In this document: piece after piece, positions 4,301 to 24,187 of the stretch
Numbering within the stretch: the first letter of the stretch is position 1
Layout: the number at the start of each line of letters is the position of its first letter
Source of the DNA: Haliotis rubra
Taxonomy: Eukaryota
DNA: 64,000 nucleotides
Assembly (NCBI RefSeq): GCF_003918875.1
Contig: NW_025765570.1
Coordinates: 682,001 to 746,000, forward strand
Direction of reading: 5' to 3'
Position numbers and translations under genes: made by a program
Notes under the pieces: generated by a model
The model's database searches: none
What the model was told of the DNA's origin: nothing
What the model saw: the letters and a program-made list of their open reading frames with translations, nothing else

Positions 4301-7066
4301 AACAAAAAACAACGTGAAGTGTCAACCAGTTGGACAAACAAAACAAGAGTGTATGTATGAACCTGCGTCCTCACCTCCACAGAGGTCTACCTTCAACCAG
4401 TTGGACAAACAAAACAACGTAGTGTAGAGTGTATGTATGAACCTGCGTCCTCACCTCCACAGAGGTCTACCTTCAACCAGTTGGACAAACAAAACAACGT
4501 AGTGTAGAGTGTATGTATGAACCTGCGTCCTCACCTCCACAGAGGTCTACCTTCAACCAGTTGGACAAACAAAACAACGTAGTGTAGAGTGTATGTATGA
4601 ACCTGCGTCCTCACCTCCACAGAGGTCTACCTTCAACCAGTTGGACAAACAAAACAACGTAGTGTAGAGTGTATGTATGAACCTGCGTCCTCACCTCCAC
4701 AGAGGTCTACCTTCAACCAGTTGGACAAACAAAACAACGTAGTGTAGAGTGTATGTATGAACCTGCGTCCTCACCTCCACAGAGGTCTACCTTCAACCAG
4801 TTGGACAAACAAAACAACGTAGTGTAGAGTGTATGTATGAACCTGCGTCCTCACCTCCACAGAGGTCTACCTTCAACCAGTTGGACAAACAAAACAACGT
4901 AGTGTAGAGTGTATGTATGAACCTGCGTCCTCACCTCCACAGAGGTCTACCTTCAACCAGTTGGACAAACAAAACAACGTAGTGTAGAGTGTATGTATGA
5001 ACCTGCGTCCTCACCTCCACAGAGGTCTACCTTCAACCAGTTGGACAAACAAAACAACGTAGTGTAGAGTGTGTATGTATGAACCTGCGTCCTCACCTCC
5101 ACAGAGGTCTACCTTACCTTCAACCAGTTGGACAAACAAAACAACGTAGTGTAGAGTGTATGTATGAACCTGCGTCCTCACCTCCACAGAGGTCTACCTT
5201 CAACCAGTTGGACAAACAAAACAACGTAGTGTAGAGTGTATGTATGAACCTGCGTCCTCACCTCCACAGAGGTCTACCTTCAACCAGTTGGACAAACAAA
5301 ACAACGTAGTGTAGAGTGTATGTATGAACCTGCGTCCTCACCTCCACAGAGGTCTACCTTCAACCAGTTGGACAAACAAAACAACGTAGTGTAGAGTGTA
5401 TGTATGAACCTGCGTCCTCACCTCCACAGAGGTCTACCTTCAACCAGTTGGACAAACAAAACATTGTAGTGTAGAGTGTATGTATGAACCTGCGTCCTCA
5501 CCTCCACAGAGGTCTACCTTCAACCAGTTGGACAAACAAAAAACAACGTAGTGTAGAGTGTATGTATGAACCTGCGTCCTCACCTCCACAGAGGTCTACC
5601 TTCAACCAGTTGGACAAACAAAACAACGTAGTGTAGAGTGTATGTATGAACCTGCGTCCTCACCTCCACAGAGGTCTACCTTCAACCAGTTGGACAAACA
5701 AAACAACGTAGTGTAGAGTGTATGTATGAACCTGCGTCCTCACCTCCACAGAGGTCTACCTTCAACCAGTTGGACAAACAAAACAATGTAGTGTAGAGTG
5801 TATGTATGAACCTGCGTCCTCACCTCCACAGAGGTCTACCTTCCACCAGTTGGACAAACAAAACAACGTAGTGTAGAGTGTATGTATGAACCTGTGTCCT
5901 CACCTCCACAGAGGTCAACCTTCAATCAGTTGGACAAACAAAACAACGTAGTGTAGAGTGTATGTATGAACCTGCGTCCTCACCTCCACAGAGGTCTACC
6001 TTCAATCAGTTGGACAAACAAAACAACGTAGTGTAGAGTGTATGTATGAACCTGCGTCCTCACCTCAACACAGAGGTCTACCTTCCACAACCAGTTGGAC
6101 AAACAAAACAACGTAGTGTAGAGTGTATGTATGAACCTGCGTCCTCACCTCCACAGAGGTCTACCTTCCACCAGTTGGACAAACAAAACAACGTAGTGTA
6201 GAGTGTATGTATGAACCTGCGTCCTCACCTCCACAGAGATCTACCTTCAACCAGTTGGACAAACAAAACAACGTAGTGTAGAGTGTATGTATGAACCTGC
6301 GTCCTCACCTCCACAGAGGTCTACCTTCAACCAGTTGGACAAACAAAACAACGTAGTGTAGAGTGTATGTATGAACCTGCGTCCTCACCTCCACAGAGGT
6401 CTACCTTCAACCAGTTGGACAAACAAAACAACGTAGTGTAGAGTGTATGTATGAACCTGCGTCCTCACCTCCACAGAGGTCTACCTTCAACCAGTTGGAC
6501 AAACAAAACAACGTAGTGTAGAGTGTATGTATGAATGAACCTGCGTCCTCACCTCCACAGAGGGTCTCAACCAGTTGGACAAACAAAACAACGTAGTGTA
6601 GAATGTATGAACCTGCGTCCTCACCCACCAGTTGGACAAACAAAACAACGTAGTGTAGAGTGTATGTATGAACCTGCGTCCTCACCTTGACAAACAAAAC
6701 AACGTAGTGTAGAGTGTATGTATGAACCTGCGTCCTCACCTCCACAGAGGTCTACCTTCAATCAGTTGGACAAACAAAACAACGTAGTGTAGAGTGTATG
6801 TATGAACCTGCGTCCTCACCTCCACAGAGGTCTACCTTCAACCAGTTGGACAAACAAAACAACGTAGTGTAGAGTGTGCGTGTGAACCTGCGTCCTCACC
6901 TCCACAGAGGTCTACCTTTCACCAGTTGGACAAACAAAACAACGTAGTGTAGAGTGTATGTATGAACTTGTGTCCTCACCTCCACAGAGGTCTACCTTCA
7001 ACCAGTTGGACAAACAAAACAACGTAGTGTAGAGTGTATGTATGAACCTGCGTCCTCACCTCCACA
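1384..7066. repeat. 80-bp tandem array, ~70 copies
   Basis: Unit aacgtagtgtagagtgtatgtatgaacctgcgtcctcacctccacagaggtctaccttcaaccagttggacaaacaaaac; near-identical copies. Confidence 0.98.
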
Positions 7067-7150
7067 AACTTCTCCCTGGTGATACACACATGCTGTGTCG
7101 TCACACTGACAGAACCGTCCTGAGTATCTCGCAGGACTGGTGCTGGATAT
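7060..7150 (-). CDS. Integrin beta-like exon 12 (I-EGF2/3)
   Basis: tcttgttgttcaag|ATA...GGA G|gtgagg; ISSTSPARYSGRFCQCDDTACVYHQGEVCG. Confidence 0.92.
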
Positions 7151-10100
7151 CTTGAACAACAAGAGGTAATATTGCCCATGAATAATTATTTTCTATGATT
7201 TACACGAAAGTCGTTTTTTGTCTCATGAATCGTATCCAGTAACTGAGAAGCATGTTCACTACATTCAAAACTTTTCTTAGTTCTATAATAGTACTAATAG
7301 TTCTATAAAATTATTCATAGTACTATACGTTCTCCTCATTCAAAACTGTTCGTAGTGCCATACGTTTGCCTAATTCAAAACTGTTCGTACACCTATATAT
7401 TATCTACATAAGAAACCGTTCGCAGTGTTCTGTGCTCCCCAAAGTCAAAACTGTTCACATTTAAAGACAGTGTACAGTTATATTGAAGAACTGTATAAAA
7501 GACAGTGTAAAATAAGCTTAAGATTCTATAAGATAATGATACGATATGGTCTCGGATTCTGCAAAAAAAGTCACTACATGATCGTAGCTAAGTGACAGGC
7601 TTGACTAACAATAAAATAACAAAGACAAAATCTAACATGGCGTTCAAGATGATTCATCTGTGTGGATGCAGGCATGTGCTTATGACTCCATGTCGTCCAT
7701 TATCCCCATCATGCCAAGCCCCTGTCAAGTTAAGAGCATGTGATATTTTTAACGTCTTTTGATAAGAAGAGGCTACAGGATCGAACCATCGACCTCCTGA
7801 TGTAGTGCAGACGCTCAATACTCCGCCTCCCGTCTTTGACCCGTGAAGATCCGAATTAGAATATTGGCCTTCAGTAACCCATGCTTGTCGTAAGAGGCGA
7901 CTAACGGGATCGGGTGGTCAGGCTTGCTGAATTGGTTGACACATGTCATCGGTTCCCAATTACGCAGATCGATGCTCCTAGTGTTGATTACTGGATTATC
8001 TGGTCCAGACTCGATTATTTCCGGACCGCCGCCATATAGTTGGAACATTGCTGAGTGCGGCGTAAACCTCAACTCACTCACTCACTCCTCTCGTTTTTAC
8101 TCTCCTGGCGGTCTGTAGCGAGCATGACGTCAGGGTAGAGTTTGTGGGAGGACGTGCTTATTGAGCAAATGTGCTCGCATACTTACCGAGTTACACTGAC
8201 ATCTTCCACAGAAGCACGTGCCGCGACCAGAGCACTCCTCAGTCATACCTCTGAAAGTGGAAACCAATGTACGTCATTACGAAGAACAATACCTGTATAA
8301 CGTGTGCATATTCACGGCAAAAAAAGGTTTGGCATCAGTTGCATCAATTAAGAACGCTAGTTCCTAAACATATTTACAAATAATTAATTTCAACTGAATT
8401 ATCATTTTTCATTAGAATACTTGAAGATGGGGAAATATGAAATATATTTTAACCAAAAGAGTGAATTTGATGACGTTAAGCTTTGGCCAGATCAAATAGG
8501 TGATTGTCCCGAACAAAAATAGTGTTTATCAATGATCCTAATTCGACTTAGTATGTAACACTTGTTCTGATTGGTCAGTGCTGTAAATTTCCAACCGTAT
8601 AATCAGCAATTTGAAAACCGATTCACCAAAACCTTTGAATGTTTCCCTACGCTATTTGGGTAAAGCTTTTTTTCAGGGCACTGACATTTGCAGAAGCATG
8701 AGGTCAATTAATTCGCCCCTATCCCGTTAAAATGGATGGACTTTGTGTTAAAAAAGACAAAACAGTTACTGTATCATAAATTCAGTTGTAAGTTCACACG
8801 ACTGACTCGCAACGGGCTGTTGACCCAATACCGTTAGATCATGGAACACGATTTATGACGTCAATATGGCCCATAGTTGAGGAATCAGCGGGCCATTATC
8901 ATTTGCAGTGGCCCGCTCATTTCTGTTAACTAGAGGGAGGTTTCATGATAATTTTAGCTATAACACTATGATTTATTCACCATTGCCAGATTTAGTCAGT
9001 ATGCACATAATAAACCAGGAAGTACAGACTTAAGAAAACCATTAACCTTTAGAGTTGTTACCCTAATTTCTGTGCCATGTACACCTTACTGTTATATCTT
9101 AAACCAAAGACTGTCGCATTTCCTTGAAGATGACAATATTTTGGCAGATGAGCAGAACGGATTCAGAAGCAAAAAGGGGTGAGGTGAGGTGAAATTGGGT
9201 TTAACGTCGTACTTGAGAATATTTCTCTCATATGACGACGTGCATGCATGTGTATGTGTATGTGCGGCTGTTTGTACTAGCCCAGACTTAGGCTGGTTTT
9301 ATACTGCTAGGCCACTGAGATACCATGCCGCAGTGAAGCATGAATACCCCACTCAGGCACATTATACTGACTCCGAGCCGATCAGTCCTTGCTGAACCCA
9401 TTAATGCCGAGCGCCAGGCAGGGACCAACAAGTACCATATTTTAACGTCTTTTGGTATGACGCGGTCGGGGATCGAACCCGCGACCTTCCGCTCTCCGGG
9501 CGGACGCTCTAACCACTACACCACTGAGGCGGTCTAGAAAAAAGGGGATGCATGGCACATATATACACATTGTTTACACTTATTGAAGACAGAAAAACTT
9601 CTAATCAACCAACATACGCTGGATTTGTTGATCTCAAGAAAGTTTTCGATAATGTTGATCGAGAGTGTATGTGGTACAAATTATGTAAAACTGGAGTTTG
9701 TGGCACAGACGACCAGTGCTCGTGGAGAGTGAGTGGCTATACACATTCAAGTTTCAACTTAACCCAGGGAGTGAAGCAGGGATGTCAACACCAACACTGT
9801 TCTCCATATATATAAACGACATGGTAGACATAAAGTCTCTCAACTGTGGAATATAAGTTGACAACATCACCATATCCCTGATGCTCTTTGGTGACGACAT
9901 TGTGTTATTAGCCCCAAACGAAGAAAGTCTACAATCTATGTTTAATTAAATGTTGTTGACAAGTGGTGTTTAAAGTGGCAACTTACATTGAATGCAGACA
10001 AAACCAAAGTTGTTCATGTTCGTCCCAACAATTGTCAAGCTACTCCTGTTAAGTTTTCATGTGGAAGTGATAATATAGAAATAGTGGATAAATATATATA

Positions 10101-13100
10101 TATTTAGGACTATGGTTCCTTGATCATGAACACTCAGATCTAAGTGTCACAGTGAGGAAATAGCCAAATCAGCGAGTCGGGCTCTGTCCTGTCTCCAGAT
10201 AAAGTGGATTGAAGCAGGAGATATGACATATGAAACATTCACTAAACGCGTTTGTTCAGCCAGTTCTATTATATGGATCTGCGGTATGGGATACGGAGGA
10301 ATACAGCTGCATAAATTCAGTTCAGAATAGAGCTTGCAGATTTGATCTTGGAGTGACTCGTTCTACTTCAAAGTGTCCCATCCGTGGAGAAATGAGCTGG
10401 AAGAGATGCCTCACAAAACGCGTCGAATTATTCAGACTGTTTGCGTCGCCGATATAACAAACTTTGCGGCTATATAACCACCGGTGTACGTCAAACACAG
10501 TACAGGTATCCCCTAAATGACGGGGTGTGAAAATCACCTAACTATGTCATGATAAATTTACTGACAATAATAATGATAGTCTGTGAGTATACCGAGACAT
10601 TACGCCCCATCTCTTAGCAACATCGGGATCGGTGGGGTAGCCTAGTGGTTAAAGCGTTGGCTCGTCACGCCGAAGACCCGGGTTCGAATCCCCACATGGG
10701 TACATTGTGTGAAGCCCATTTCTGGTGTTGCTGGAATATTGCTAAAAGCGGCGTAAATCCAAACTCGGTCAGTCAGTCTTAGCAACAGTAACCTTCAACG
10801 CTTTTCAGTTTTCTACTTGTTTGCACCACTTAGTATACTGTATAAGCAGTCCTCATGGTAACCAAATCATGAATGCGTTTCTGCAGCAGCAACCACAGCA
10901 CTTATGTTATACTCCTTCATTACAGACATGAGTGAGTGAGTGAAAAAGTATGGTTTTCTGAAGCTTTCAGAAATATGCCAGAATTATCGCGACGGGTGCC
11001 CACAGAAATGTATAGTGCCTATGAGGAATGGTACCTTGACCACTCCTGACATGTTTGAAGATCTGGAGACATGGTGTGTCATCGTATCCAAATTGAAGTC
11101 CAGACTCAATTATGTATCGTTGTTATTAAGAGTAAAGATTGCTGTACCCTCACAGGTAGTGTAGCAAATGATACTTTTGAAGTGAACTATTATAGTTAAA
11201 ACACATTTAAATATGTAATAAAGTTTTACTGGTGACATGTAGGCAGCAGTAAGGCATGTAACATCAAACACCTTCAGCCTGTCCTTGTTTTATCCTATTG
11301 GTGCCGAGCTGCAGGAAGAGACAGACAGACAGACATACAGACAATACTTTATTACCTTGAAAGGAATTCGGTTTGGTTCACAATGAATAACAACATATAA
11401 AATATAACACTACTAAAAACATAAAGAGAGATAAATATGTGCTTAAATAGAAATAAATGAATAAGATGAAAACTGGACATTCAACATTTGTTTAAAATTG
11501 TAATACTTTGAGGTACAAAAGACGTTCGAGCTTGTTTAGTCTTGGTGATTGGCACTGTGTAGAGGCGGCCCGAAGACAAAAGCTTATACTCTAGATTTAA
11601 GTGTAAGATACGAGTGACGTCTTTGTACGTCTTCGCGTATAATGCAATAAGAAGTTCCAACCTTCTGCTCTCCGGGCAGACGCTCTGTCGACTAGATCAC
11701 GAAATCTGTGGTCTTCGGCGCGACAACAACTAAATAGTCCCAGAAAGCTGTGGTCCACGACGGAAATTCTGCTGAATAGTCCCAGAAATCTGTGGTCCAC
11801 GACGGAAATTCTGCTGAATAGTCCCAGAAATCTGTGGTCTTTGGTGCGACAACTGCTGAATAGTCCCAGAAATCTGTGGTCCACGACGGAAATTCTGCTG
11901 AATAGTCCCAGAAATCTGTGGTCTTCGACGCGACAACTGCTGAATAGTCCCAGAAAGCTGTGGTCTTCGGTGCGACAACTGCTGAATAGTCCCAGAAACC
12001 TGTGGTCCACGACGGAAATTCTGCTGAATAGTCCCAGAAATCTGTGGTCTTCGGTGCGACAACTGCTGAATAGTCCCAGAAATCTGTGGTCTTCGGTGCG
12101 ACAACTGCTGAATAGTCCCAGAAATCTGTGGTCTTCGGTGCGACAACTGCTGAATAGTCCCAGAAATCTGTGGTCCACGACGGAAATTCTGCTGAATAGT
12201 CCCAGAAATCTGTGGTCTTCGGTGGAAATTCTGCTGAATAGTCCCAGAAATCTGTGGTCCCAGAAATCTGTGGCGACAACTGCTGAATAGTCCCAGAAAT
12301 CTGTGGTCCACGACGCGACAACTGCTGAATAGTCCCAGAAACCTGTGGTCTTCGGTGCGACAACTGCTGAATAGTCCCAGAAATCTGTGGTCTTCGACGC
12401 GACAACTGCTGAATAGTCCCAGAAAGCTGTGGTCTTCGGTGCGACAACTGCTCAATAGTCCCAGAAACCTGTGGTCCACGACGGAAATTCTGCTGAATAG
12501 TCCCAGAAATCTGTGGTCTTCGGTGCGACAACTGTTGAATAGTCCCAGAAATCTGTGGTCTTCGGTGCGACAACTGCTGAATAGTCTCAGCAATCTGTGG
12601 TCTTCGGTGCCACAACTGCTGATTAGTCCCAGAAATCTGTGGTCCACGACGGAAATTCTCCTAAATAGTCCCAGAAATCTGTGGTCTTCGGTGCCACAAC
12701 TGCTGAATAGTCCCAGAAATCTGTGGTTCACGACGGAAATTCTCCTGAATAGTCCCAGAAATCTGTGGTCCACGACGGAAATTCTGCTGAATAGTCCCAG
12801 AAATCTGTGGTCTTTGGTGTGACAACTGCTGAATAGTCCCAGTAATCTGTGGTCCACGACGGAAATTCTGCTGAATAGTCCCAGAAACCTGTGGTCTTCG
12901 GTGCCACAACTGCTGAATAGTCCCAGAAACCTGTGGTCCTCGACGGAAATTCTGCTGAATAGTCCCAGAAATCTGTGGTCTTCGGTGCCACAACTGCTGA
13001 ATAGTCCCAGAAACCTGTGGTCCTCGACGGAAATTCTGCTGAATAGTCCAAGAAACCTGTTGTCTTCGGTGCGACAACTGCTGAATAGTCCCAGAAACCT

Positions 13101-16100
13101 GGGGTCTTCGGCGCGACAACTGCTGAATAGTTCCAGAAACCTGTGGTTTTCGGTGCGACAACTGCTGAATAGTCCCAGAAATATGTTGTCTTCGGCGCGA
13201 CAACTACTGAATAGTCCCAGAAATCTGGGATTTTGGGTCCGGATCGCCCATCGCCATCAGGATATTTCTGTATACACCCATAGCGTGGTATACGTCCAAA
13301 CGTGACTCGCTGTTTTCTAACACATTACGCTAACAAGCCGTAGCAGAAGTCAAATACCTTTTCAGCATAATCAACTCACATTAATTCACAACTTACCGGG
13401 CAATGCACTGATCCCTGCCGCCACACTCACAGTTATCTCCATACCTGCCTTCATTACAAGAGCAAAGCCCACACGCGTACGTTCCTTGCTTGTGGCACAC
13501 TACCGACTCGATCTTTGGTAACAGAGAGGGAAACAGTCAGTCTCCTGGGATCAGACAAATAGATCCACTAATCTACACACTCGAACAAATTACTCCCATC
13601 AAACCACCAAAACCTGCTTTCATAATTAGAAGAAGTCTACTAAAAGCCATTGTACCATGAACATGGTACCATGAATCAATATCTAGTAGTGCTGATACAA
13701 GGGGAACGTATCCAGTCCCACTGGTGGAACTTATCATACAATAGATGCAATGGCAAGTCAATTGTTTCCGTGAAAAACACGGGAACATATGTTAGAAGCC
13801 AAAACGGGGAATTGGAACAAACGTTTCTTACCGGGCGGGTAATGTAAAAAAAAAATCCCATTTTTCATAATGGGCAATGGCAACAGATTGTTGTGCTTTT
13901 CCAGACAAAGCTATCCCTTGATCACGGTCAGGTTTAACATACAGCTTACTCTATGGACTTTAACAGTGGTTGAGACGTAGGGTTGGCATTTAAACAGCTG
14001 GAATCCAGACACTCCACCAGTATTGGCAAGTGTGCTAAGGTTTTGCTGAAAAATGCTCCTCAACCAATGTCTTAATCGCAATCCATCATAGTTGGACTCA
14101 TTACGTTTCAGTCACAATTCTTATCTTTTACAACAAGTCGTTTGAACAAACAGATAGAACTATGCCATCGAAGTGCGCAAGACCATAAATATCTGTGAAA
14201 AGGCGGGGAAAAACGTTTTCGTAGCTCGACATCATAGTTAATACAAAAAACACTGTGACGACAAAGATTCTATCGACATGACTTAATAAGTCATGGAATT
14301 AACAAAATCTATGTTCTATGTTATAAATCTACTCACGACAGCTTCGTCTGGTTTTTCGCAGTCACAACGACACACCGAGGTGAGGAGAACCTTCAGGGGC
14401 CTCTTTTTAAAGCTGCCAACAATCACCTTGATCCTGAAAGGGGGGAACAAAGACTGTAATTACTGAGTTACCAGGCCAGTCCCATTAAGTTCAGGGTGAG
14501 ACACAAAGTAAATTAAATGCGTTTAACGATGATACCAATCAGTGCGTGATACCCATCAGTACGTGATACCCACAGCACGAACCGTTGTCCAAGATTCTGG
14601 CACGGCTATGCAGCTCAGCAACCTTCTCAGCACGTCAGCTTCGACTGTTTCCAAACACTACATCTTCAACTGCATAAGATGGCTTTATGTCAATAAGTTG
14701 TCCTTGATTCCCTATATGACAGACATCATATCGTACATTCTATCCTAATGTATTTTAATTTATGACAAACTTAGTGACTGCCTTTGTTGAAGTTGTTCAA
14801 TACGCGTACAGAGAGATATAGTAAGCTTGCAAACGTACTTTTTTGGTTTAGGGAGGCACCTCTTCATTTGGACCGTCATAGTAACATTCACCTGCAGAAA
14901 CAAACCCTGATACTCGAGTCGGGGACGACACTTTACTTATTTCACTTATATCGTGGTGGCACTCACCACTAATTATTCCTAGAAGATTGTACTAGACAAT
15001 ATACATGATGGTATAACTATTGAAAAAGCACATGCACTGGGGATGTGTTTAGCCGTACGTGCCGCCATTAATAATGACGGTGTGTCGCAACGAGTGCTAT
15101 GTCTTGTTTGGATTGTGTACGGATCGTCGTTCATGCTATCAACCACTGGTTTTACATGTTCTTGATTCGACAATGTCAATGGGGCTGTGACGACGCAGGA
15201 CAACATGCACTCAAGGTGACAACTAATACACATATTAAGTTATCTCACCACATTTCCATTTGATGTCGGGCATTTCGCGATTTTCTTCTTCCATTCAAAT
15301 CTAAAAAGATTAAACATTTGTTAAAATTCGAACATTTGAAAAGCCCTTTGAAAATGATAAGGAACTTTTATTTCGGATTCTAAATTATAAACTTATTTAT
15401 GCACTTTCGAATATATCTTTCAAATATTATTTCACGCGAGATTTACACAATATAAGACTTTACAAATGGACGAGAGGCCAGTCATTTGACCTGAAACTGA
15501 CGTTCTTTTACGAACGACACATTTTGACGTTCAAGAGACGGTGTTTTATTACAAAATACGTTAACAACGACGGACCCCTTCCGTATTCATGCAGATTCAG
15601 ATTCAGTTTATTCAGTAATTCTGGCCTTAAGGCCTACATTACAATTGTTGATGTTACAAAATACTAAGCAAGTCACGTGAACTTATGGTTACATTCATGG
15701 TTGCATTCATGGCTACGCACAGTGAAAACATGTTTGAGATAAATTGCTACAGACTTAACAATCATAATATTCATTCGGACACCCTTGTTGGAATTCCGTA
15801 ACATTAACAAATTGAGAAGCATTATCTGCGATCACTTTGACTCTTTAATGTAAGACTATGTGTTTACGCATTCATTGGCAATAGTACCAGATTTGACTGC
15901 ATGCCTGTGCATATAACTTATATCCTCTCCACAACCATTAGTCAACAAAACAGCCAGCTGCACATCCAACCCACGGATATCGTTGCGATTTCCCGGACAC
16001 TATTCTTCGGTTTCTCTTTGGCCATAATCACTTTTCATAATCATACTCATAAGGTTATAATCGGCCGACTGATCGAATAAATTCAGTAAGAAGTTTGAAA

Positions 16101-19100
16101 ATCTCGTCACGTTTTTTACGTTTGCGCCTCCAACCTCATAATAAAAAAGTACTAGAATCTGTACTTTACTAAGAAAGTGTAATCCCAAATATAACACATG
16201 TTACCGATTTCTAAATGACATTGTGTAATCCTGATGACTGGTTACCATCCGCCATAAAATAGAAGCAATATATAGGACTAGTACTTCATTTACAGACATG
16301 GTCAGACGTAACAAAGACCATCTGATATGAAATGTAATTTTCTGGAGATGAGGGTACCGTATTTGCGATGCGAGTACCGATCTCTTACAGAAGCAAGTCT
16401 CTAATATACGGAGGTATGGTCATCGTGATGCCATTGAAATCAGATTCAATTCATTGTTCACGTCACGATATGGCTGATACATTGCGATGTGACGATAAAT
16501 ATTAACTCACTCACTATAAAAAGGTATAAAAATTGACATTCATTTTGTGAGTTCTTTCGAAAATGAACCTGTACAGGCAGAGTGAAAACCTGTGTGAGCT
16601 TCAGAGCTTTGCTTGGTCATTTTATGAAGGTATATACTCCAAACAACTCACTCAAAGTATTTGTCAACCCTTAAGTGGATATCGAGCTGTCCACCTATAT
16701 GTCGCCACTCACCCTTCACAGTCAGCCTGTACTGTAACCCTCACTCCTCGCGGGTAGCGAAACCGCATAATCACCGGTGTCTGGAAAACGAAGTCTTAAA
16801 CAATGTACCAAACTGAAGTCATATATACTTCCCATCAATAGTTTAGACTCAATTAAAACACTCACTTTATGCTATGTATATGCAAACTTTATGCAGATGA
16901 ATTGCACGAGGATCATGCATCAAATTGCTGAAAAGCATGTGCAAATATCGTGCGTGTGAATAGCTGCGTTTTGGTGTAAAGTTTTGTTAAAAATCCCCAA
17001 ATTTTACTGATTTTTATAATTTATTGAACTCATGACAATATTCTTTTCAACGTTACAATACAGTTCATATTTTAAACGGTATGGAATATTTTGCAAAATT
17101 AAGTAAGTGGCTATATTTACACAAGTGAGTCTAAACTTTTGATAGGAAGTATATATACATGAGCATTATTCTAGCATGCTTTGCAAACCAAATTCTGCGT
17201 ATCAAAATGGAAACTCGGATTATTTTACTCTGATGAATACACAAACTGAAATTGAATTTGGTATTAACAATTTACTTGCAATCTCAGAGGAATACACAAA
17301 AACGTGAATGCCCCGAAGTATGGACACCATGATTTAGTCACCAGTCTGATTGTCAAACAGTTCTCAACAATTGTACAATGCCTCGTTACATGTCCATGCC
17401 CGAAAACTGCCGTCGGTAACTGTAGAAATAGCGCGTTGTATCGGACCAATGAACCCTATGAATGTCCTTTTTCGCGGTTTTCTCTAAGCCTGTGTATCAT
17501 TAAGTAAGTGATGTCTGATCGGACGACGTTACATGATACCAGCGGCCCCATTCTTTCTCTATCATTAAGTAAGTGATGTCTGATCGGACGACGTTACATG
17601 ATACCAGCGGCCTCCTTCTTTCTCTATCATTAAGGAAGTGATGTCTGATCGGACGACGTTACATGATACCAGCGGCCTCCTTCTTTCTCTATCATTAAGG
17701 AAGTGATGTCTGATCGGACGACGTTACACGATACCAGCGGCCTCCTTCTTTCTCTATCATTAAGGAAGGGATGTCTGATCGGACGACGTTATATGATACC
17801 TGCGGCCTCCTTCTTTCTCTATCATTAAGGAAGGGATGTCTGATCAGACGACGTTACATGATACCAGCGGCCTCCTTCTTTCTCTATCATTAAGGAAGGC
17901 ATGTCTGATCGGACGACGTTATATGATACCTGCGGCCTCCGTCTTTCTCTATCATTAAGGAAGTGATGTCTGATCGGACGATGTTACATGATACCAGCGG
18001 CCTCCTTCTTTCTTCATCATTAAGGAAGTGATGTCTGATCGGACGACGTTACATGATACCAGCGGCCTCCTTCTTTCTCTATCATTAAGGAAGTGATGTC
18101 TGATCGGACGACGTTACATGATACCAGCGGCCTCCTCTATCATTAAGGAAGTGATGTCTATCGACGTTACATGATACCAGCGGCCCCCATTCTTTCTCTC
18201 ATTAAGGAAGTGATGTCTGATCGGACGACGTTACATGATACCAGCGGCCTCCTTCTTTCTATCATTAAGGAAGTGATGTCTGATCGGACGACGTTACATG
18301 ATACCAGCGGCCTCATTCTTTCTCTATCATTAAGTAAGTGATGTCTGTCTGATACCAGCGGACGACATTACATGATACCAGATCGGACCTCCTTCCAGCT
18401 CTATCATTAAGTAAGTGATGTCTGATCGGACGACGTTACATGATACCAGCGGCCTCCTTCTTTCTCTATCATTCATTAAGGAAGTGATGTCTGATCGGAC
18501 GACGTTACATGATACCAGCGGCCTCCTTCTTTCTCTATCATTAAGGAAGTGATGTCTGATCGGACGACGTTACATGATACCAGCGGCCTCCTTCTTTCTC
18601 TATCATTAAGGAAGTGATGTCTGATCGGACGACGTTACATGATACCAGCGGCCTCCTTCTTTCTCTATCATTAAGGAAGGGATGTCTGATCGGACGACGT
18701 TACATGATACCTGCGGCCTCCTTCTTTCTCTATCATTAAGGAAGGGATGTCTGATCGGACGACGTTACATGATACCAGCGGCCTCCTTCTTTCTCTATCA
18801 TTAAGGAAGGATATGTCTGATCGGACGACGTTATATGATACCAGCGGCCTCCTTCTTTCTCTATCATTAAGGAAGTGATGTCTGATCGGACGACGTTCAT
18901 GATACCAGCGGCCTCCTTCTTTCTCTATCATTAAAGGAAGTGATGTCTGATCGGACGACGTTACATGATACCAGCGGCCTCCTTCTTTCTCTATCATTAA
19001 GGAAGTGATGTCTGATCGGACGACGTTACATGATACCAGCGGCCTCCTTCTTTCTCTATCATTAAAGGAAGGTATCTGATCGGACGACGTTACATGATAC

Positions 19101-22100
19101 CAGCGGCCTCCTTCTTTCTCTATCATTAAGGAAGTGATGTCTGATCGGACGACGTTACATGATACCAGCGGCCTCCTTCTTTTCTATCATTAAGGAAGGA
19201 TGTCTGATCGGACGACGTTACATGATACCTGCGGCCTCCTTCTTTCTCTATCATTAAGGAAGTGATGTCTGATCGGACGACGTTACATGATACCAGCGGC
19301 CTCCTTCTCTATCATTAAGGAAGGGATGTCTCGGACGACGTTACATGATACCAGCGGCCTCCTTCTTTCTCTATCATTAAGGAAGTGATGTCTGATCGGA
19401 CGACGTTACATGATACCAGCGGCCTCCTTCTTTCTCTATCATTAAGGAAGTGATGTCTGATCGGACGACGTTACATGATACCAGCGGCCTCCTTCTTTTC
19501 TATCATTAAGGAAGTGATTGATCGGACGACGTTACATGATACCAGCGGATCTCTATCATTAAGGAAGGACGATCGACGACATGATACCAGCGGCCTCCTT
19601 CTTTCTCTATCATTAAGGAAGTGATGTCTGATCGGACGACGTTACATGATACCAGCGGCCTCCTTCTTTCTCTATCATTAAGGAAGTGATGTCTGATCGG
19701 ACGACGTTACATGATACCAGCGGCCTCCTTCTTTCTCTATCATTAAGGAAGTGATGTCTGATCGGACGACGTTACATGATACCAGCGGCCTCCTTCTTTC
19801 TCTATCATTAAGGAAGTGATGTCTGATCGGACGACGTTACATGATACCAGCGGCCTCCTTCTTTCTCTATCATTAAGGAAGGGATGTCTGATCGGACGAC
19901 GTTACGACGCCTCCTTCTTTCTCTATCATTAAGGAAGTGATGTCTGATCGGACGACGCATGATACCAGCGGCCTCCTTCTTTCTCTATCATTAAGGAAGG
20001 ATGATCGTTACATGATCGCGGACGACGTCAGACGACATGATACCAGCGGCCTCCTTCTTTCTCTATCATTAAGGAAGGGATGTCTGATCGGACGACGTTA
20101 CATGATACCAGCGGCCTCCTTCTTTCTCTATCATTAAGGAAGGATGTCTGATCGGACGACGTTACATGATACCAGCGGCCTCCTTCTTTCTCTATCATTA
20201 AGGAAGGGATGTCTGATCGGACGACGTTACATGATACCAGCGGCCTCCTACCAGCGGCCTCCTTCTTTCTATCATTAAGGAAGGGATGTCTGATCGGACG
20301 ACGTTACATGATACCAGCGGCCTCCTTCTTTCTCTATCATTAAGGAAGTGATGTCTGATCAGACGACGTTACATGATACCAGCGGCCTCCTTCTTTCTCT
20401 ATCATTAAGGAAGTGATGTCTGATCGGACGACGTTACATGATACCAGCGGCCTCCTTCTTTCTCTATCATTAAGTGATGTGATCGGACGACGTTCATGAT
20501 CAGACGACGTTATCATTGATACTGATCAGACGACGTTACATGATACCAGCGGCCTCCTTCTTTCTCTATCATTAAGGAAGGGATGTCTGATCGGACGACG
20601 TTACATGATACCAGCGGCCTCCTTCTTTCTCTATCATTAAGGAAGGGATGTCTGATCAGACGACGTTACATGATACCAGCCTCCTTCTGATGACGCTGGA
20701 GGAGAGTCCGACTTCCATCTTAGGCATGGGTCATGGGATTGGATGAATAAGGACTCGGTCATCATGTTCATTTGTTTTCTTCGTTCTTCCAGGTCTTGAC
20801 CGATCCTTTACTTCACTAGTGGCCACGCGCTTCATCACATGTTGTCTAATATCCATGTTCTGGTTACTGTTCATGTTGGCACCTTTCCTTTGTTGCAACA
20901 CCACATCCCTGTGTTATGCATGCCAATCGTGTATGTTCTGAAAATCTACGTCCTGCCGTGTCCAGAAAGGTTCATCCTTGTACTGCCGTCTATTAAATCA
21001 GTTCTGAAAACTGCAGCGCACATGCTGTACTTATACGCCAATATGACTGGCGCCTTCGCAGCAGATAAACATGATGCCCACTGCTTTTGAGAAATTGTTT
21101 GAAGCATGTGCATGTGAATTCCAGTATGCTAGGTATGATCACCTGTTGGGACCAAAATTTTAAAACTGCCCTTGGATTCAGGTGGGCTTAATTAATGGTC
21201 ATGTGTATACCAAACTGTACATTACTGACACAAGTCAGAAGCATTATGCATACGTACATTTTAAGCTGGTGTTGAAACAGTGACCAAAATTTGAAAATAT
21301 ATTTTCAGTTTGGAAAGACTTATTTACATACCATGCACAAGACCAAATCACATTGTTGTTCCACACAGATTCATAACGGCCATCCACCCTAACAGAAACC
21401 CATCATGACGGACATGGGCAGGACAACAGACAAACAAAAGGCCATAGGCTCACTTGACCCTCCTTCCGGGGTGGGCTTAAACAGGGTTCAAGAAGTATGG
21501 GACTTGATATTTGATTTCATTTTATAATACTTTATTGTCTCGAAGGAAACTTCACAAGCAATAGCCATATATATCAAAACATCAAGACTTACCTTCTTGG
21601 CTTTAACACGGAAAGGAATGTTCGCTTTGGCACCTGTAGATGGAATATGTAATAGGAAGAGTGTCACAAAAACATGGCACTAGATCGGCATGAAATGAGA
21701 GCTGTTGTATATCTTTCCTCAATACAAAACGAGAGTACAAACTACGTGAAATGAGAGAGCTGGTCCCAGCATTCAAAATTCGTCTATATAACGCCCATAG
21801 TGAAGCTAAAGTAACAACTCACAAGTGAGATGTATTTAAGGACAGATGTAATGCCAACAGATTTAATTCAACAATGTTAGCTTGATGTGAGTCAATGCGT
21901 TTGTGTTAGTGTGGAATAGATGGTGGTAATATTCCTCTACCTCGTCTCAAATGGAGGTTAACAAGCTGTGGTGTAATGGGACGGTTTCGCCTGATCTCAC
22001 GGGCCTGCAATCATACATATTTTGCGAATGAGTAAAGATATTTAACCCCGAAATCATATTCAAAGGCAGATTCTCTCAAATGACGACAGTTAACCTTCCT

Positions 22101-24046
22101 TGGCATGACATAATCTTCATATTACTACAGTTAGTCTTCCTTGACATGATAGAATCTTCTTATCACTACAATTAATCGTCTTAGTCATGACAGAATCTTT
22201 ATATTACTACAGTTAATCTTCCTTGACATGACAGAATCTTCACATAATCACGGTTAATCACCCTTGTCATGACAGAATCTTCATATTACCACAGTTAGTC
22301 TTCCTTTTCATGACAGAATCTTTATATTACTACAGTTAATCTTCCTTGACATGACAGAATCTTCACATTACCACGGTTAATCTTCCTTGTCATGACAGAA
22401 TCTTCATATTACTACAGTTAATCTTGCTTGACATGACAGGATCTACATATTACTACAGTTAATCTTCCTTGGCATCGCAGAATCTACATATTACTACAGT
22501 TAATCTTCCTTGACATGACAGAATCTTCATATTACCACAGTTTATCTTGCTTGTCATGACAGAATCTTCTACTATTAGTCTTCCTTGGCATGATAGAATC
22601 TTCATATTACTACAATTAATCGTCCTTGGCATGACAGAATGGTCATAATTACTACAGTTAATCGTCCTTTGACATGACAGAATCTACATATTACTACAGT
22701 TAATCGTCCTTTGACATGACAGAATCTACATATTACTACAGTTAATCTTCCTTGGCATCGCAGAATCTACATATTACTACAGTTAATCTTCCTTGTCATG
22801 ACAGAATCTTCATATTACTGCATAACATATTACCGAAGTAATCTGAAAGGCTAGCCCTATAAATGTTTTTTTCAGTAGTTTACTCTGTATGCGCTCCCAA
22901 AGGCCTCAAGTATAACAACGCTGGATGTACAATGGTCATGACTATTCATTCAATGTTTATGTACGTGACAGCTCATTTGAAGTGTCCCGTGTTACGTCCC
23001 GAAATAAAAATAATACATTAGGTGATAACGGGAATATCTTTGTTGTACTTAGAGTAATGGCATGCGTATTGAGTGTATATTGTTGGGCCCTACAATGGGT
23101 AAGTTTCGTGTACCATGCAATAGAATTATGACATTAATACATATCGCTTCTAAATGAAGGAATATTCGACATGTGCCTGACAAATAGTGTTATATGGGAA
23201 AGAGATTTGTTTCAGTAATAAAATACATTTAGTTCATACCTTTCTAATTGTCGTGAAGATCCGTTCCGGCGACACAATGTGTTTTTCATAACAAGTTGAA
23301 CCCTTCTTCAGCTTATTAAAGGGAAAGCATCGAGGTTCTCGAAAATATCCCTGTTGATAATATATAGGTATGGCATGTATCAGACAGTAAGTGAGTGAGT
23401 ATGGTTTTACGCCGCTTTTAGCAATATTCCAGCAATATGGGGGACACCAGAAATGGGCTTCACACAATGTGCCCCTGTGGGGAATCGAACCCGGGTCTTC
23501 GGCGTGACGAGCCAACGTTTTAACCACTAGGCTACCCCACAGCCCTGTATCAGACACAGTTTTACTTGGTGTACATACCTGATATGGTGTTACACAATTA
23601 CAACATGGAGTAAGACTAATCTGTTAGGTACGCACCTCGCTGCACCACGCGCACCTGACATTGGCGGTGATGCACTCACTGCAGGAGGTGGCGTTTGTGG
23701 GACAGATGGGCTTCCTGGACACTGAAGACACAACAATACACATTAAGGATACACACAGACTGCGGGCGTTACCATGTTAGGTCACTTTAAAATTAGAAAC
23801 CTCCCCCTATTTTTAAGAAGAATTTCCGTGCATAGAATGATGCGGATGTTTTGGTCCACAAGACTGCCTTACTTCAAAATTTATGAGGGGGTAAATTTTA
23901 AGGGTTCACCAATGGGGTGGGGCAGCAATTCTGTACACACGCACTGGGGGGCAGCAATTCTGTAAATAAAAGTATGTTTAAAAAATTATGGGAAGGGGAG
24001 GGGGGGCATTGATTTTGTACATGATATAGATACAAAATCATCATCA

Positions 24047-24086
<40 letters not shown>

Positions 24087-24187
24087 AGAGTTACCGTTTA
24101 AAGGACAATGTAGCAACGCCGATAAAACACACGTGTACCTGCTAAGTTCACAGCAGTAAGCAGCAATACGACAGCCAAGATGTCCAT
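7060..24187 (-). CDS. Integrin beta-like gene, 12 coding exons (signal peptide-PSI-hybrid-I-EGF1-3), lacking the beta-I domain; 3' end unresolved
   Basis: Hand-spliced product: MDILAVVLLLTAVNLAVSRKPICPTNATSCSECITANVRCAWCSEGYFREPRCFPFNKLKKGSTCYEKHIVSPERIFTTIRKAREIRRNRPITPQLVNLHLRRGAKANIPFRVKAKKTPVIMRFRYPRGVRVTVQADCEGFEWKKKIAKCPTSNGNVVNVTMTVQMKRCLPKPKKIKVIVGSFKKRPLKVLLTSVCRCDCEKPDEAVIESVVCHKQGTYACGLCSCNEGRYGDNCECGGRDQCIARGMTEECSGRGTCFCGRCQCNSISSTSPARYSGRFCQCDDTACVYHQGEVCG. Integrin-beta motifs: SCxECI..CAWC, PQxxxLxLRxG, CxCxCE, CSGRGxCxCGxCxC, YSGxFCxCDD. All introns GT-AG and phase-consistent. Confidence 0.9.
7838..8087 (+). mobile_element. SINE-like family B (no tRNA head; (TCAC)n tail)
   Basis: gacccgtgaagatccg...cttgtcgtaagaggcgactaacgggatc...gcggcgtaaacctcaactcactcactc; homologous copies at 25443, 36337 and 50248. 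Confidence 0.88.
8187..8250 (-). CDS. Integrin beta-like exon 11 (I-EGF2)
   Basis: cactttcag|A...TCG|gtaagt; GMTEECSGRGTCFCGRCQCNS. Confidence 0.93.
9012..10460 (+). mobile_element. Degenerate non-LTR retrotransposon reverse transcriptase remnant (RTEX-like, clade uncertain), interrupted by a SINE
   Basis: Fragments LTFRVVTLISVPC...ILADEQNGFR, FVDLKKVFDNVDR, QGVKQGC, LMLFGDDIVLLA and VQPVLLYGSAVW...VQNRACRF, with frameshifts and stops. Confidence 0.9.
9180..9535 (-). mobile_element. tRNA-derived SINE family C (Meta-domain-like body, (CACCT)n tail)
   Basis: Minus-strand head gtggtgtagtggttagagcgtccgcc...ggttcgatcccc (Pol III A/B boxes); flanked by aaaaagggg at 9171 and 9539; second copy at 27124. 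Confidence 0.9.
10623..10776 (+). mobile_element. tRNA-derived SINE family A
   Basis: ggtggggtagcctagtggttaaagcg...ggttcgaatccc; TSD tcttagcaaca at 10612 and 10777. Confidence 0.92.
11701..13229. repeat. 42-bp tandem array with two interspersed unit types, ~36 copies
   Basis: Constant gctgaatagtcccagaaatctgtggtc followed by either cacgacggaaattct or ttcggtgcgacaact. Confidence 0.97.
13397..13512 (-). CDS. Integrin beta-like exon 10 (I-EGF1)
   Basis: accaaag|ATC...GCC CG|gtaagt; IESVVCHKQGTYACGLCSCNEGRYGDNCECGGRDQCIA. Confidence 0.92.
14337..14433 (-). CDS. Integrin beta-like exon 9 (hybrid end, CxCxCE linker)
   Basis: cctttcag|G...GTC|gtgagt; IKVIVGSFKKRPLKVLLTSVCRCDCEKPDEAV. Confidence 0.9.
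14839..14891 (-). CDS. Integrin beta-like exon 8 (hybrid)
   Basis: tttctgcag|GTG...AAA AA|gtacgt; VNVTMTVQMKRCLPKPK; phase 0 to phase 2. Confidence 0.82.
15249..15300 (-). CDS. Integrin beta-like exon 7 (hybrid)
   Basis: tctttttag|A...GTG|gtgaga; FEWKKKIAKCPTSNGNV; phase 2 to phase 0. Confidence 0.8.
16143..16230 (+). mobile_element. 3' fragment of family D element
   Basis: aaaaagtactagaatctgtactttactaagaaagtgtaatcccaaat...cattgtgtaatc matches the right ends of the 40732 and 48765 copies. Confidence 0.8.
16713..16780 (-). CDS. Integrin beta-like exon 6 (hybrid strand that normally follows beta-I)
   Basis: cgttttccag|ACA...GAA GG|gtgagt; TPVIMRFRYPRGVRVTVQADCE(G); phase 0 to phase 2. Confidence 0.85.
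16826..17151. mobile_element. Tc1/mariner-type MITE
   Basis: Inverted termini tacttcccatcaatagtttagactca / tgagtctaaacttttgataggaagta in a TA context; left-half homolog at 34093. Confidence 0.8.
17496..20690. repeat. 65-bp tandem array, ~49 copies
   Basis: Unit gaagtgatgtctgatcggacgacgttacatgataccagcggcctccttctttctctatcattaag. Confidence 0.98.
20670..20990 (-). mobile_element. Degenerate Tc1 transposase N-terminal (HTH) remnant
   Basis: Minus-strand fragments TIGMHNTGM, ATSEVKDRSRPGRTKKTNEHDDRVL (GRPR-type motif) and LSSSVIRRRLVS, running into the 65-bp array. Confidence 0.75.
21593..21633 (-). CDS. Integrin beta-like exon 5 (hybrid strand that normally precedes beta-I)
   Basis: catctacag|GT...AAG|gtaagt; (G)AKANIPFRVKAKK; phase 1 to phase 0. 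Confidence 0.85.
21941..22004 (-). CDS. Integrin beta-like exon 4 (hybrid domain, N-terminal part)
   Basis: gattgcag|GCC...CGA G|gtagag; AREIRRNRPITPQLVNLHLRR(G), matching the integrin-beta IxPQxxxLxLRxG motif. Confidence 0.88.
22086..22820. repeat. 41-bp tandem array, ~18 diverged copies
   Basis: Unit cttcatattactacagttaatcttccttgacatgacagaat; lies in intron 3 of the gene. Confidence 0.95.
23240..23350 (-). CDS. Integrin beta-like exon 3 (PSI C-terminal half)
   Basis: atcaacag|GGA...AAG|gtatga; 37 codons, GYFREPRC...GSTC...IVSPERIFTTIRK. Confidence 0.85.
23387..23545 (-). mobile_element. SINE family A
   Basis: Reverse complement of the family A head and body; TSD tgtatcagaca at 23376 and 23546. 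Confidence 0.92.
23636..23721 (-). CDS. Integrin beta-like exon 2 (PSI domain)
   Basis: gtgtcttcag|TG...GAG|gtgcgt; SRKPICPTNATSCSECITANVRCAWCSE. Confidence 0.92.
24048..24084. repeat. (CA)n microsatellite
   Basis: Pure CA run in intron 1. Confidence 0.95.
24139..24187 (-). CDS. Integrin beta-like exon 1 (signal peptide)
   Basis: ATG GAC ATC TTG... = MDILAVVLLLTAVNLA, then G|gtacac donor (phase 1); hydrophobic core. Confidence 0.8.

Follow-up and report, generated by a model that had tools for sequence, protein, structure and literature searches.

An abalone gene for a predicted secreted integrin-beta ectodomain without a beta-I domain

Background

Canonical integrin beta subunits carry a beta-I domain of ~240 amino acids inserted within the hybrid domain; the point of insertion is a loop of the hybrid domain, so that the two ends of beta-I lie side by side, and the hybrid domain is usually seen as the lever that passes the movements of the beta-I domain on to the integrin legs. 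Here we analyse a gene on the minus strand of a 64,000-nucleotide stretch of the genome of the abalone Haliotis rubra (contig NW_025765570.1, positions 682,001 to 746,000; hereafter the window, to which all coordinates without a prefix refer), which encodes an integrin-beta-like protein whose two hybrid-domain halves are joined with no beta-I domain between them.

To our knowledge, the only stand-alone integrin stalk to have been characterised is ITGBL1, also known as TIED. Passages of PMC8921176 that draw on Berg et al. 1999 call it a 'stand-alone integrin stalk' composed of ten I-EGF repeats only, and passages with Song et al. 2018 and Berg et al. 1999 as their sources describe it as secreted and as an inhibitor of integrin activation from outside the cell. 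A second point of reference is the Caenorhabditis elegans protein C05D9.3, whose GFP fusion is classed as 'cell membrane (+/- muscle arms)' in body-wall muscle in Tables 1-2 of PMC3096668; a Brugia orthologue, Bm1972a, is entered in a table of potential glycosylphosphatidylinositol (GPI)-anchored proteins in PMC6742230. Our literature search returned no paper describing or studying the architecture reported below, and C05D9.3 appeared in lists only.

Results

We rebuilt the exons of the gene manually from the minus-strand sequence and found that 12 exons, running from 24187 to 7060, join into an open frame of 297 amino acids that begins with a methionine and a hydrophobic signal peptide. The donors of all 12 are GT, and the acceptors are AG with a pyrimidine tract upstream. 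Exon 1 (24187-24139) supplies the start codon and signal peptide, MDILAVVLLLTAVNLA, which is the sole hydrophobic 19-mer of the protein. The PSI domain is divided between exon 2 (23721-23636, CPTNATSCSECITANVRCAWCSE; Pfam PSI_integrin, E 3e-6), whose canonical cysteines are invariant in our alignment, and exon 3 (23350-23240), which also encodes the beginning of the hybrid domain. Exon 4 (22004-21941) contributes a hybrid strand, ITPQLVNLHLRR, in which P94 and Q95 are conserved with canonical betas, and exon 5 (21633-21593) contributes the final hybrid strand ahead of the canonical beta-I site; it ends ...GAKANIPFRVKAKK (...RVKAKK) in phase 0 and aligns to ...FKVKFKRVEG of canonical betas, immediately ahead of YPIDLYYLMDLS. 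Exon 6 (16780-16713) opens in phase 0 with TPVIMRFRYPRGVRVTVQADCE (TPVIMRF...), the first hybrid strand past the beta-I site, and aligns to SSVKLQDN...IKYFSSC, the segment that in canonical betas lies directly past the beta-I domain. The spliced junction of exons 5 and 6 reads AAGCCAAGAAG followed directly by ACACCGGTG.

The hybrid domain continues through exon 7 (15300-15249, FEWKKKIAKCPTSNGNV), a short exon placed by a phase-constrained search between its neighbours and also present in the annotated protein, and exon 8 (14891-14839, VNVTMTVQMKRCLPKPK), and it ends in exon 9 (14433-14337), which carries the CxCxC linker to I-EGF1, ...LLTSVCRCDCEKPDEAV. Exon 10 (13512-13397) encodes I-EGF1 (Pfam I-EGF_1, E 7e-9), exon 11 (8250-8187) the core of I-EGF2, ECSGRGTCFCGRCQCNS (Pfam EGF_integrin, E 7.5e-8), and exon 12 (7150-7060) the end of I-EGF2 and the start of I-EGF3, ...RYSGRFCQCDDTACVYHQGEVCG. 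Because this last exon in the window ends in phase 1, without a stop, and abuts an 80-bp satellite, we took the 12 exons to be only part of a gene. Intron 12, which begins at 7059 and runs past position 1, is dominated by the satellite and measures 8705 bp in total, the next exon lying outside the window at L001:35836, where L001 is the locus that holds the full gene.

With the I-EGF1 exon as query, exhaustive HMMER searching gave one strong match, a protein of 537 amino acids (P0001) whose residues 1-297, including the N-terminal signal peptide, are identical to the 12-exon model. P0001 is annotated by NCBI as 'integrin beta-like protein 1 [Haliotis rubra]' on contig QXJH01000161.1 of assembly GCA_003918875.1. 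We obtained the coordinates of all exons of P0001, of its orthologues and of the chiton genes discussed below by exact-peptide exon mapping, tblastn having overlooked most of the short exons. The full H. rubra gene has 20 coding exons across 33 kb; exons 13-20 sit 1.6-8.8 kb past the start of the window and encode more I-EGF modules and a beta-tail domain, and the last exon adds only (M)-C-P and the stop. The original prediction of 12 exons joined in frame without stops, with a phase 0 to phase 0 junction of exons 5 and 6 at the canonical beta-I site, is thus reproduced by the rebuilt model and by the alignment. The extent that it gave to the gene, 7060-24187, takes in only the 5' 55%, the gene continuing beyond the 80-bp satellite. 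Its account of the 4812-bp intron 5 (16781-21592) stands in part: the 65-bp array is there (17495-20680), as called by Tandem Repeats Finder (TRF), and the intron holds no remnant of beta-I coding sequence and no DxSxS or YYLMD exon, as had been proposed. The Tc1 relic is not confirmed, since a Pfam search of the open stretches of intron 5 and the neighbouring introns gave no transposase and no VWA match, and a weak RVT_1 match in intron 10 only.

The order of elements in P0001 is signal peptide, PSI domain, hybrid halves joined by a short hairpin, six I-EGF-type modules, beta-tail domain and stop. Pfam recognises EGF_integrin (E 2.6e-21), I-EGF_1 (E 2.3e-6) and Integrin_B_tail (E 9.4e-16) in the protein, and neither P0001 nor the annotated orthologous proteins have a match to PF00362, the beta-I family. 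The canonical cysteines of the PSI domain (C23, C30, C33, C40, C43, C53 and C65, all invariant against canonical betas), the hybrid domain and I-EGF1-2 are all kept in the alignment, and the total of 64 cysteines in P0001 is even.

When P0001 is aligned with canonical betas of horseshoe crab, damselfly and eel, ~260 columns, which begin at YPVDLYYLMDLS and reach the end of helix alpha7, are absent between K116/K117 and T118. We built a hidden Markov model (HMM) of the beta-I domain, with 243 positions, from 34 canonical betas; held-out canonical betas score 1e-110 to 4e-55 with it. Applied to P0001, this model was negative, and in the six-frame translation of the window it found nothing, the best stretch (E 18) falling outside the gene. 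Over the window, L001 and the three orthologous abalone loci, which gave 14,559 six-frame stretches in all, the best E was 0.1, and no match lay in intron 5. The window contains no DxSxS or YYLMD motif in any of its reading frames, and a regular-expression scan of all six frames for motifs of the metal-ion-dependent adhesion site (MIDAS) type gave chance matches only.

The gene also lacks the parts that anchor canonical betas in the membrane. Its full-length product ends ...ATGTGCCCGTGA and then a stop (C-terminus ...RVRVERTRMCP), and the signal peptide is the only hydrophobic segment of P0001. The stop codon lies 1-2 codons past the last beta-tail cysteine, a position conserved within one codon in four abalones and equivalent in the chiton, and the mollusc proteins end in ...VERTRMCP, ...RNRMC or ...KVFAGR, with no hydrophobic tail and hence no GPI-type anchor. 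With an HMM of the transmembrane helix and cytoplasmic tail, for which the controls scored 1e-36 and 1e-28, we found nothing in the loci, including 10 kb downstream in H. rubra (best E 3.2). Neither the gene nor its orthologues encode a beta-I domain, a transmembrane helix or a cytoplasmic tail. Since the signal peptide is the only hydrophobic segment, the stop after the beta-tail domain is conserved and the search for a transmembrane helix and tail was negative, the mollusc protein is predicted to be soluble and secreted. From the loss of the MIDAS, of the adjacent (ADMIDAS) and synergistic (SyMBS) metal-binding sites and of the face that binds the alpha propeller, we infer that the protein is incapable of canonical ligand binding and of building a canonical head with an alpha subunit; having no membrane anchor, it should likewise be unable to signal as a receptor or to serve as an adhesion receptor.

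A stretch of ~88 I-EGF-type residues in P0001 (residues 299-386, exons 13-15, L001:35836-36797) is extra, being absent from the chiton protein and from canonical betas; AlphaFold confidence is below 50 across much of it.

Orthologues from three other abalones, whose assemblies consist of contigs or scaffolds of ~89-94 Mb, are 82% (H. asinina), 69% (H. rufescens) and 69% (H. cracherodii) identical to P0001. All three genes have a structure of 19-20 exons and share the junction at which KAK(K/T) is followed by TP, and the intron at this junction is free of arrays in each (1439 bp in H. asinina, 2358 bp in H. rufescens and 2395 bp in H. cracherodii). Five isoforms are annotated in H. asinina and two in H. 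rufescens, and even the longest (X1, of 542 and 572 amino acids) are without a beta-I domain. The chiton Liolophura sinensis has a protein of 450 amino acids (P0020) with the same architecture, encoded by a gene with the same intron positions, including the one at the junction. This headless gene lies on CM072720.1 and the canonical beta genes of the chiton lie on CM072730.1, a separate chromosome record; a canonical beta gene of the chiton shares several intron positions with the abalone headless gene. As the junction and its intron are common to four abalones and a chiton, the loss of the beta-I domain predates the split of gastropods and chitons.

Some further observations concern individual gene models. 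Within exon 10 of the H. rubra gene, at about 13449, an internal alternative donor, GGCAG/GTATGG, agrees with H. asinina isoform X2 (P0016), whose I-EGF1 is shorter; an isoform using it would lose half of I-EGF1, cysteines included, which would be an odd product if real. The H. asinina intron after exon 6 (L002:7641-45056) is 37 kb long, against 1.2-1.4 kb in the other three Haliotis; a beta-I-like stretch in it (L002:43392-43532, E 0.1) is out of order, and we judged it a chance match. The model of the chiton canonical beta P0057 (L007) skips from ...TISYQSMCLG to YACGVCKC, probably through an annotation gap in which hybrid C-terminal exons are missing.

We estimated the ratio of nonsynonymous to synonymous substitution rates (dN/dS) by the method of Nei and Gojobori (NG86), with bootstrap, on codons taken from the mapped exons of the four Haliotis genes, in all of which frames and splice sites are intact. 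For the five deeper species pairs, with dS up to 0.71, the whole-gene ratio is 0.28-0.41 with bootstrap upper bounds of 0.37-0.58, and for the shallow pair, H. rufescens and H. cracherodii, it is 0.45 with an upper bound of 0.77. By region, dN/dS is 0.21-0.28 for the hybrid domain (the five deeper pairs), 0.25-0.43 for the I-EGF modules and 0.24-0.31 for the beta-tail domain (deeper pairs), while a shallow comparison of the tail region, in one pair, gives ~1. The coding sequence is under moderate purifying selection and is not that of a pseudogene.

AlphaFold2, run on a 44-sequence alignment, gave a model of P0001 with a mean predicted local distance difference test (pLDDT) score of 78. The hybrid domain, residues 76-194, is modelled entirely as beta-strands at pLDDT 91-97, and the former insertion point of the beta-I domain becomes a tight hairpin between strands 106-114 and 120-125. 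In Foldseek searches the model matches integrin beta ectodomains at E ~1e-31 to 1e-33, and among its matches are fragments of integrin beta2 composed of PSI, hybrid and I-EGF domains: 5e6v_A (224 amino acids, TM-score 0.74, root mean square deviation 4.0) and 2p26 (280 amino acids, TM-score 0.65). At the sequence level, phmmer aligns residues 11-223 to 5e6w, 2p26 and 5e6v (chain positions 8-224) as one contiguous stretch at E ~1e-12; native betas align as two stretches ~260 residues apart. Chains of only 224-280 residues cannot hold a beta-I domain, and these structures are the 'PHE' constructs, from which the I-like domain was reportedly excised on purpose. Their existence as crystal structures is experimental precedent for the folding of such a module with neither a beta-I domain nor an alpha subunit. 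The PSI-hybrid-I-EGF1 part of the abalone protein is predicted with high confidence to fold as these fragments do, with a closed hybrid sandwich. A fold search of afdb_swissprot listed canonical betas only among its best 30 matches and placed neither C05D9.3 nor ITGBL1 there.

The same beta-I gap is present in our alignment in the four Haliotis-clade proteins, in the chiton protein and in five proteins of nematode type (the Pristionchus proteins P0102 and P0109, Trichuris P0090, P0105 and P0081), which comprise sequences from Pristionchus mayeri, P. entomophagus and Trichuris suis, a metaclust entry and an open reading frame (ORF) from Logan. The last of these, P0081, is a distant relative of 468 amino acids that is contiguous on a 1638-nt Logan contig from SRR23162816. 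Pfam places PSI_integrin at ~22-66 and I-EGF_1 at ~221-283 in the Pristionchus and Trichuris proteins, with the same spacing. None of the five has a beta-tail match; at the C-terminus of each, a Ser/Gly-rich stretch precedes a short hydrophobic tail, an ending that resembles a GPI signal. The mollusc form, with its beta-tail domain and soluble end, and the nematode form, with its GPI-like tail, represent two different solutions for the extracellular placement of one headless module.

In a tree built after removal of the beta-I columns, the mollusc and the nematode headless proteins each form a clade with support of 99, near the base and outside the canonical bilaterian clades; the approximately unbiased (AU) test does not reject a single clade of the two (p 0.384). 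The C. elegans entry gave the H. cracherodii orthologue its NCBI name, 'uncharacterized integrin beta-like protein C05D9.3'. A profile search with the alignment of headless proteins returned no further members, its word prefilter probably hiding C05D9.3 and arthropod clusters, and the ESM Atlas gave hints of clusters without PF00362 in nematodes and arthropods, which we treat as leads only.

The window, at ~40-46% GC, is rich in tandem arrays. The 65-bp array of intron 5 comprises ~47 copies at 88% identity, and intronic arrays of 42/84 bp (11701-13227, ~36 copies) and 41 bp (22067-22819, ~18 copies) lie elsewhere in the gene. Intron 5 also holds a pair of 34-nt inverted repeats (16821-16854 and 17123-17156). 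The 80-bp satellite of intron 12 (TRF, 1384-7066) starts precisely at the donor of exon 12 and contains ~70 repeats of ...TGTGGAG/GTGAGGAC, which puts dozens of decoy donors into the intron. The 14-mers that it has in common with H. rufescens and H. cracherodii are only those of the exon-12 end and donor (L003:21265 and L004:19595), and the array therefore grew from that donor, in the H. rubra lineage only. The 65-, 42- and 80-bp satellites are absent from the loci of the three other Haliotis; they are recent and irrelevant to the loss of beta-I.

Copies of a tRNA-like short interspersed element (...GGGTAGCCTAGTGGTTAAAACG...GGGTTCGATTCCCCAC...) occur in both orientations in several introns (23400-23530, 9442-9570, 10642-10785 and 7815-8081); Rfam gave nothing at gathering score on the whole window, no tRNA included. 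The RVT_1 fragment of intron 10, at 9552-9815 on the opposite (plus) strand, has an E of 0.001, below the gathering score, and is probably a decayed retroelement. The next gene called downstream, at L001:50618-51691, encodes in a single exon a seven-transmembrane receptor of 357 amino acids (7TM_GPCR_Srw / 7tm_1).

Discussion

We conclude, with a probability of about 0.85, that this is a genuine, selected and annotated H. rubra gene for a secreted, stand-alone integrin-beta ectodomain that has no head. The proposal of a headless PSI-hybrid-EGF protein incapable of canonical ligand binding agrees with the same junction in four Haliotis species and a chiton and with the lack of any beta-I remnant; that such a gene is maintained agrees with the dN/dS estimates, the conserved cysteines and the intact frames; and the closed hybrid fold looked for in the original prediction is the one that AlphaFold2 predicts and that the beta2 fragments match. 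We stress that the finding is not new at the sequence level, as the gene is already in RefSeq/GenBank. The architecture had been thought undescribed, which holds in so far as we found no paper describing it and fails in that the protein is annotated by NCBI, has an orthologue named after C05D9.3 and shares its layout with nematode proteins: the gene is a member of a catalogued but unstudied family of integrin-beta-like proteins without beta-I, not a new architecture.

Several points weigh against this conclusion. The function is proposed by analogy with ITGBL1, a protein without PSI, hybrid and beta-tail domains. Transcript-like support comes from the P0081 Logan ORF, that is, from a distant relative, and from RefSeq isoforms of H. 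asinina, and our search for short transcript-derived proteins spanning the junction (residues 70-215 of P0001) returned nothing, a result that says nothing on expression either way. Purifying selection is moderate, with dN/dS at 0.3-0.4, and the 50 codons round the junction are noisier, at 0.3-0.8. Residues 326-376 and 403-425 of the AlphaFold2 model have a pLDDT below 50, and the headless state of molluscs and nematodes may have had one origin or two.

As to what such a protein would do, we hypothesize that it acts as a soluble 'free leg', modulating adhesion or integrin activation by binding to the legs of integrins or to other partners outside the cell. We rank this mode of action first, on the model of ITGBL1, reportedly a secreted inhibitor of integrin activation, and give it somewhat less than an even chance. 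Of the roles suggested in the original prediction, that of a secreted protein or decoy suits the signal peptide, the stop after the beta-tail domain and the want of a transmembrane exon; that of an alpha-independent receptor does not suit the mollusc form, which has no anchor.

About equally possible is a role independent of integrins, in which the protein is real and secreted but reuses the integrin leg scaffold for structure or recognition in the extracellular matrix or hemolymph, for instance as an EGF-rich part of the matrix or in immune recognition. We saw no physical tie to integrins in this analysis, the abalone proteins have gained ~88 residues of I-EGF modules, and the entries for nematode relatives in the tables of PMC6742230 and PMC3096668, GPI-like-tethered and at the muscle cell membrane, suggest a role at the surface or in the matrix in which integrin legs need have no part. 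Against this stand the action on integrin activity that passages of PMC8921176 report for ITGBL1, and the retention of the native order of PSI, hybrid, I-EGF and beta-tail domains, through which, to judge from the solved ectodomains that the model matches, the surfaces that pack on the alpha and beta legs in bent integrins may persist.

It is very improbable that the gene is a decaying partial duplicate, a recent pseudogene that has lost its beta-I and transmembrane exons and has yet to acquire stops. Such decay would suit the satellites that invade the introns, one of them copying the exon-12 donor ~70 times, and a dN/dS that is not very low and reaches ~1 in the shallow tail comparison. It is opposed by frames and splice sites that have stayed intact across four species at dS to ~0.7 and in the chiton, by whole-gene bootstrap upper bounds of 0.37-0.58 in the five deeper pairs, and by the retention of all canonical PSI, hybrid and EGF cysteines and of the same architecture in nematode proteins.

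Two further explanations, a collapsed assembly and exon skipping from a canonical gene, we regard as excluded by the presence of the same junction in the other Haliotis assemblies and in the chiton. The 3.2 kb of 65-bp array in intron 5 is of a kind prone to collapse, and a single H. rubra assembly was available, so beta-I exons might in principle have been lost there; yet exons 5 and 6 are adjacent across short, array-free introns in the three other abalones, the chiton gene is interrupted by an intron at this very junction, the window and the four loci gave no beta-I signal, and the annotated proteins of all species are without PF00362. That the 537-aa product is a minor splice form of a canonical beta gene, as the several annotated isoforms and the compatible phases of exons 5 and 6 might allow, is contradicted by the lack of beta-I-, transmembrane- or cytoplasmic-like coding sequence in the gene or its flanks (10 kb to either side for H. 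rubra and 3 kb for the other abalones), by the longest isoforms and by the separate chromosome records of canonical and headless genes in the chiton.

If the gene is, as we prefer, a selected headless one, the chiton canonical beta gene suggests how it may have arisen. That gene has a phase-0 intron exactly at the C-boundary of the beta-I domain with the hybrid domain (NYK/KISSTVEL), corresponding to the acceptor of exon 6, and no intron at the N-boundary, where one exon runs from the hybrid strand into YPVDLYF.... By the simplest path, and probably, a new donor just past the last N-terminal hybrid strand came to be spliced to the ancestral phase-0 acceptor at the boundary of beta-I and hybrid domain, and that the skipped exons, and the exons for the transmembrane helix and tail, would have been lost later. 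Since the ends of the insertion are adjacent in space, such a deletion would be structurally tolerable.

A wider hypothesis, which we consider unlikely as it stands, is that PSI-hybrid-I-EGF proteins without beta-I are an ancient family, dating from the protostome or even bilaterian ancestor, in which the module of leg plus hybrid domain does a conserved extracellular job of its own, such as docking to the legs of membrane integrins to keep them bent or extended; the family would be soluble in molluscs and GPI-tethered in nematodes, and vertebrate ITGBL1 would be a further-reduced descendant of it. If it were true, the family would represent a widespread and unstudied trans-acting regulator of integrin conformation.

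Retention of the PSI, hybrid, I-EGF and beta-tail domains for hundreds of millions of years without beta-I, anchor or tail implies that the module of leg plus hybrid domain has a function of its own. The abalone, chiton and nematode relatives, C. elegans C05D9.3 above all, offer a tractable route to an extracellular free-leg role and to the age of ITGBL1-like regulation. The names 'integrin beta-1-like' and 'beta-PS-like' are misleading, because these proteins cannot, as far as their domain content indicates, be adhesion receptors.

Compared with known systems, the abalone protein is homologous over its whole length to the canonical betas (human beta1, beta2 and beta3, Drosophila betaPS and C. 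elegans PAT-3) and keeps their order of PSI, hybrid, I-EGF and beta-tail domains, but it has two or three more I-EGF-type modules and none of their beta-I domain (~243-260 alignment columns), transmembrane helix or cytoplasmic tail (NPxY, Integrin_b_cyt). With ITGBL1 it shares an NCBI name and the general character of a secreted piece of the beta leg, secretion being predicted from sequence in the abalone, with no beta-I, transmembrane helix or cytoplasmic tail; whereas ITGBL1 has I-EGF repeats only, the abalone protein keeps the PSI, the whole hybrid and the beta-tail domains. The Pristionchus and Trichuris proteins of the C05D9.3 type have, like the abalone protein, a PSI domain followed by a contiguous hybrid domain without beta-I and then I-EGF, and they differ in their GPI-like tail and in giving no beta-tail match. 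Closest in domain content are the human integrin beta2 fragments (PDB 2P26, 2P28, 5E6V, 5E6W and 1YUK), in which, likewise, PSI is followed by a hybrid domain that leaves no space for beta-I and then by I-EGF. Those fragments were made in the laboratory from a canonical subunit; the abalone protein, a gene product conserved across species, is their natural counterpart.

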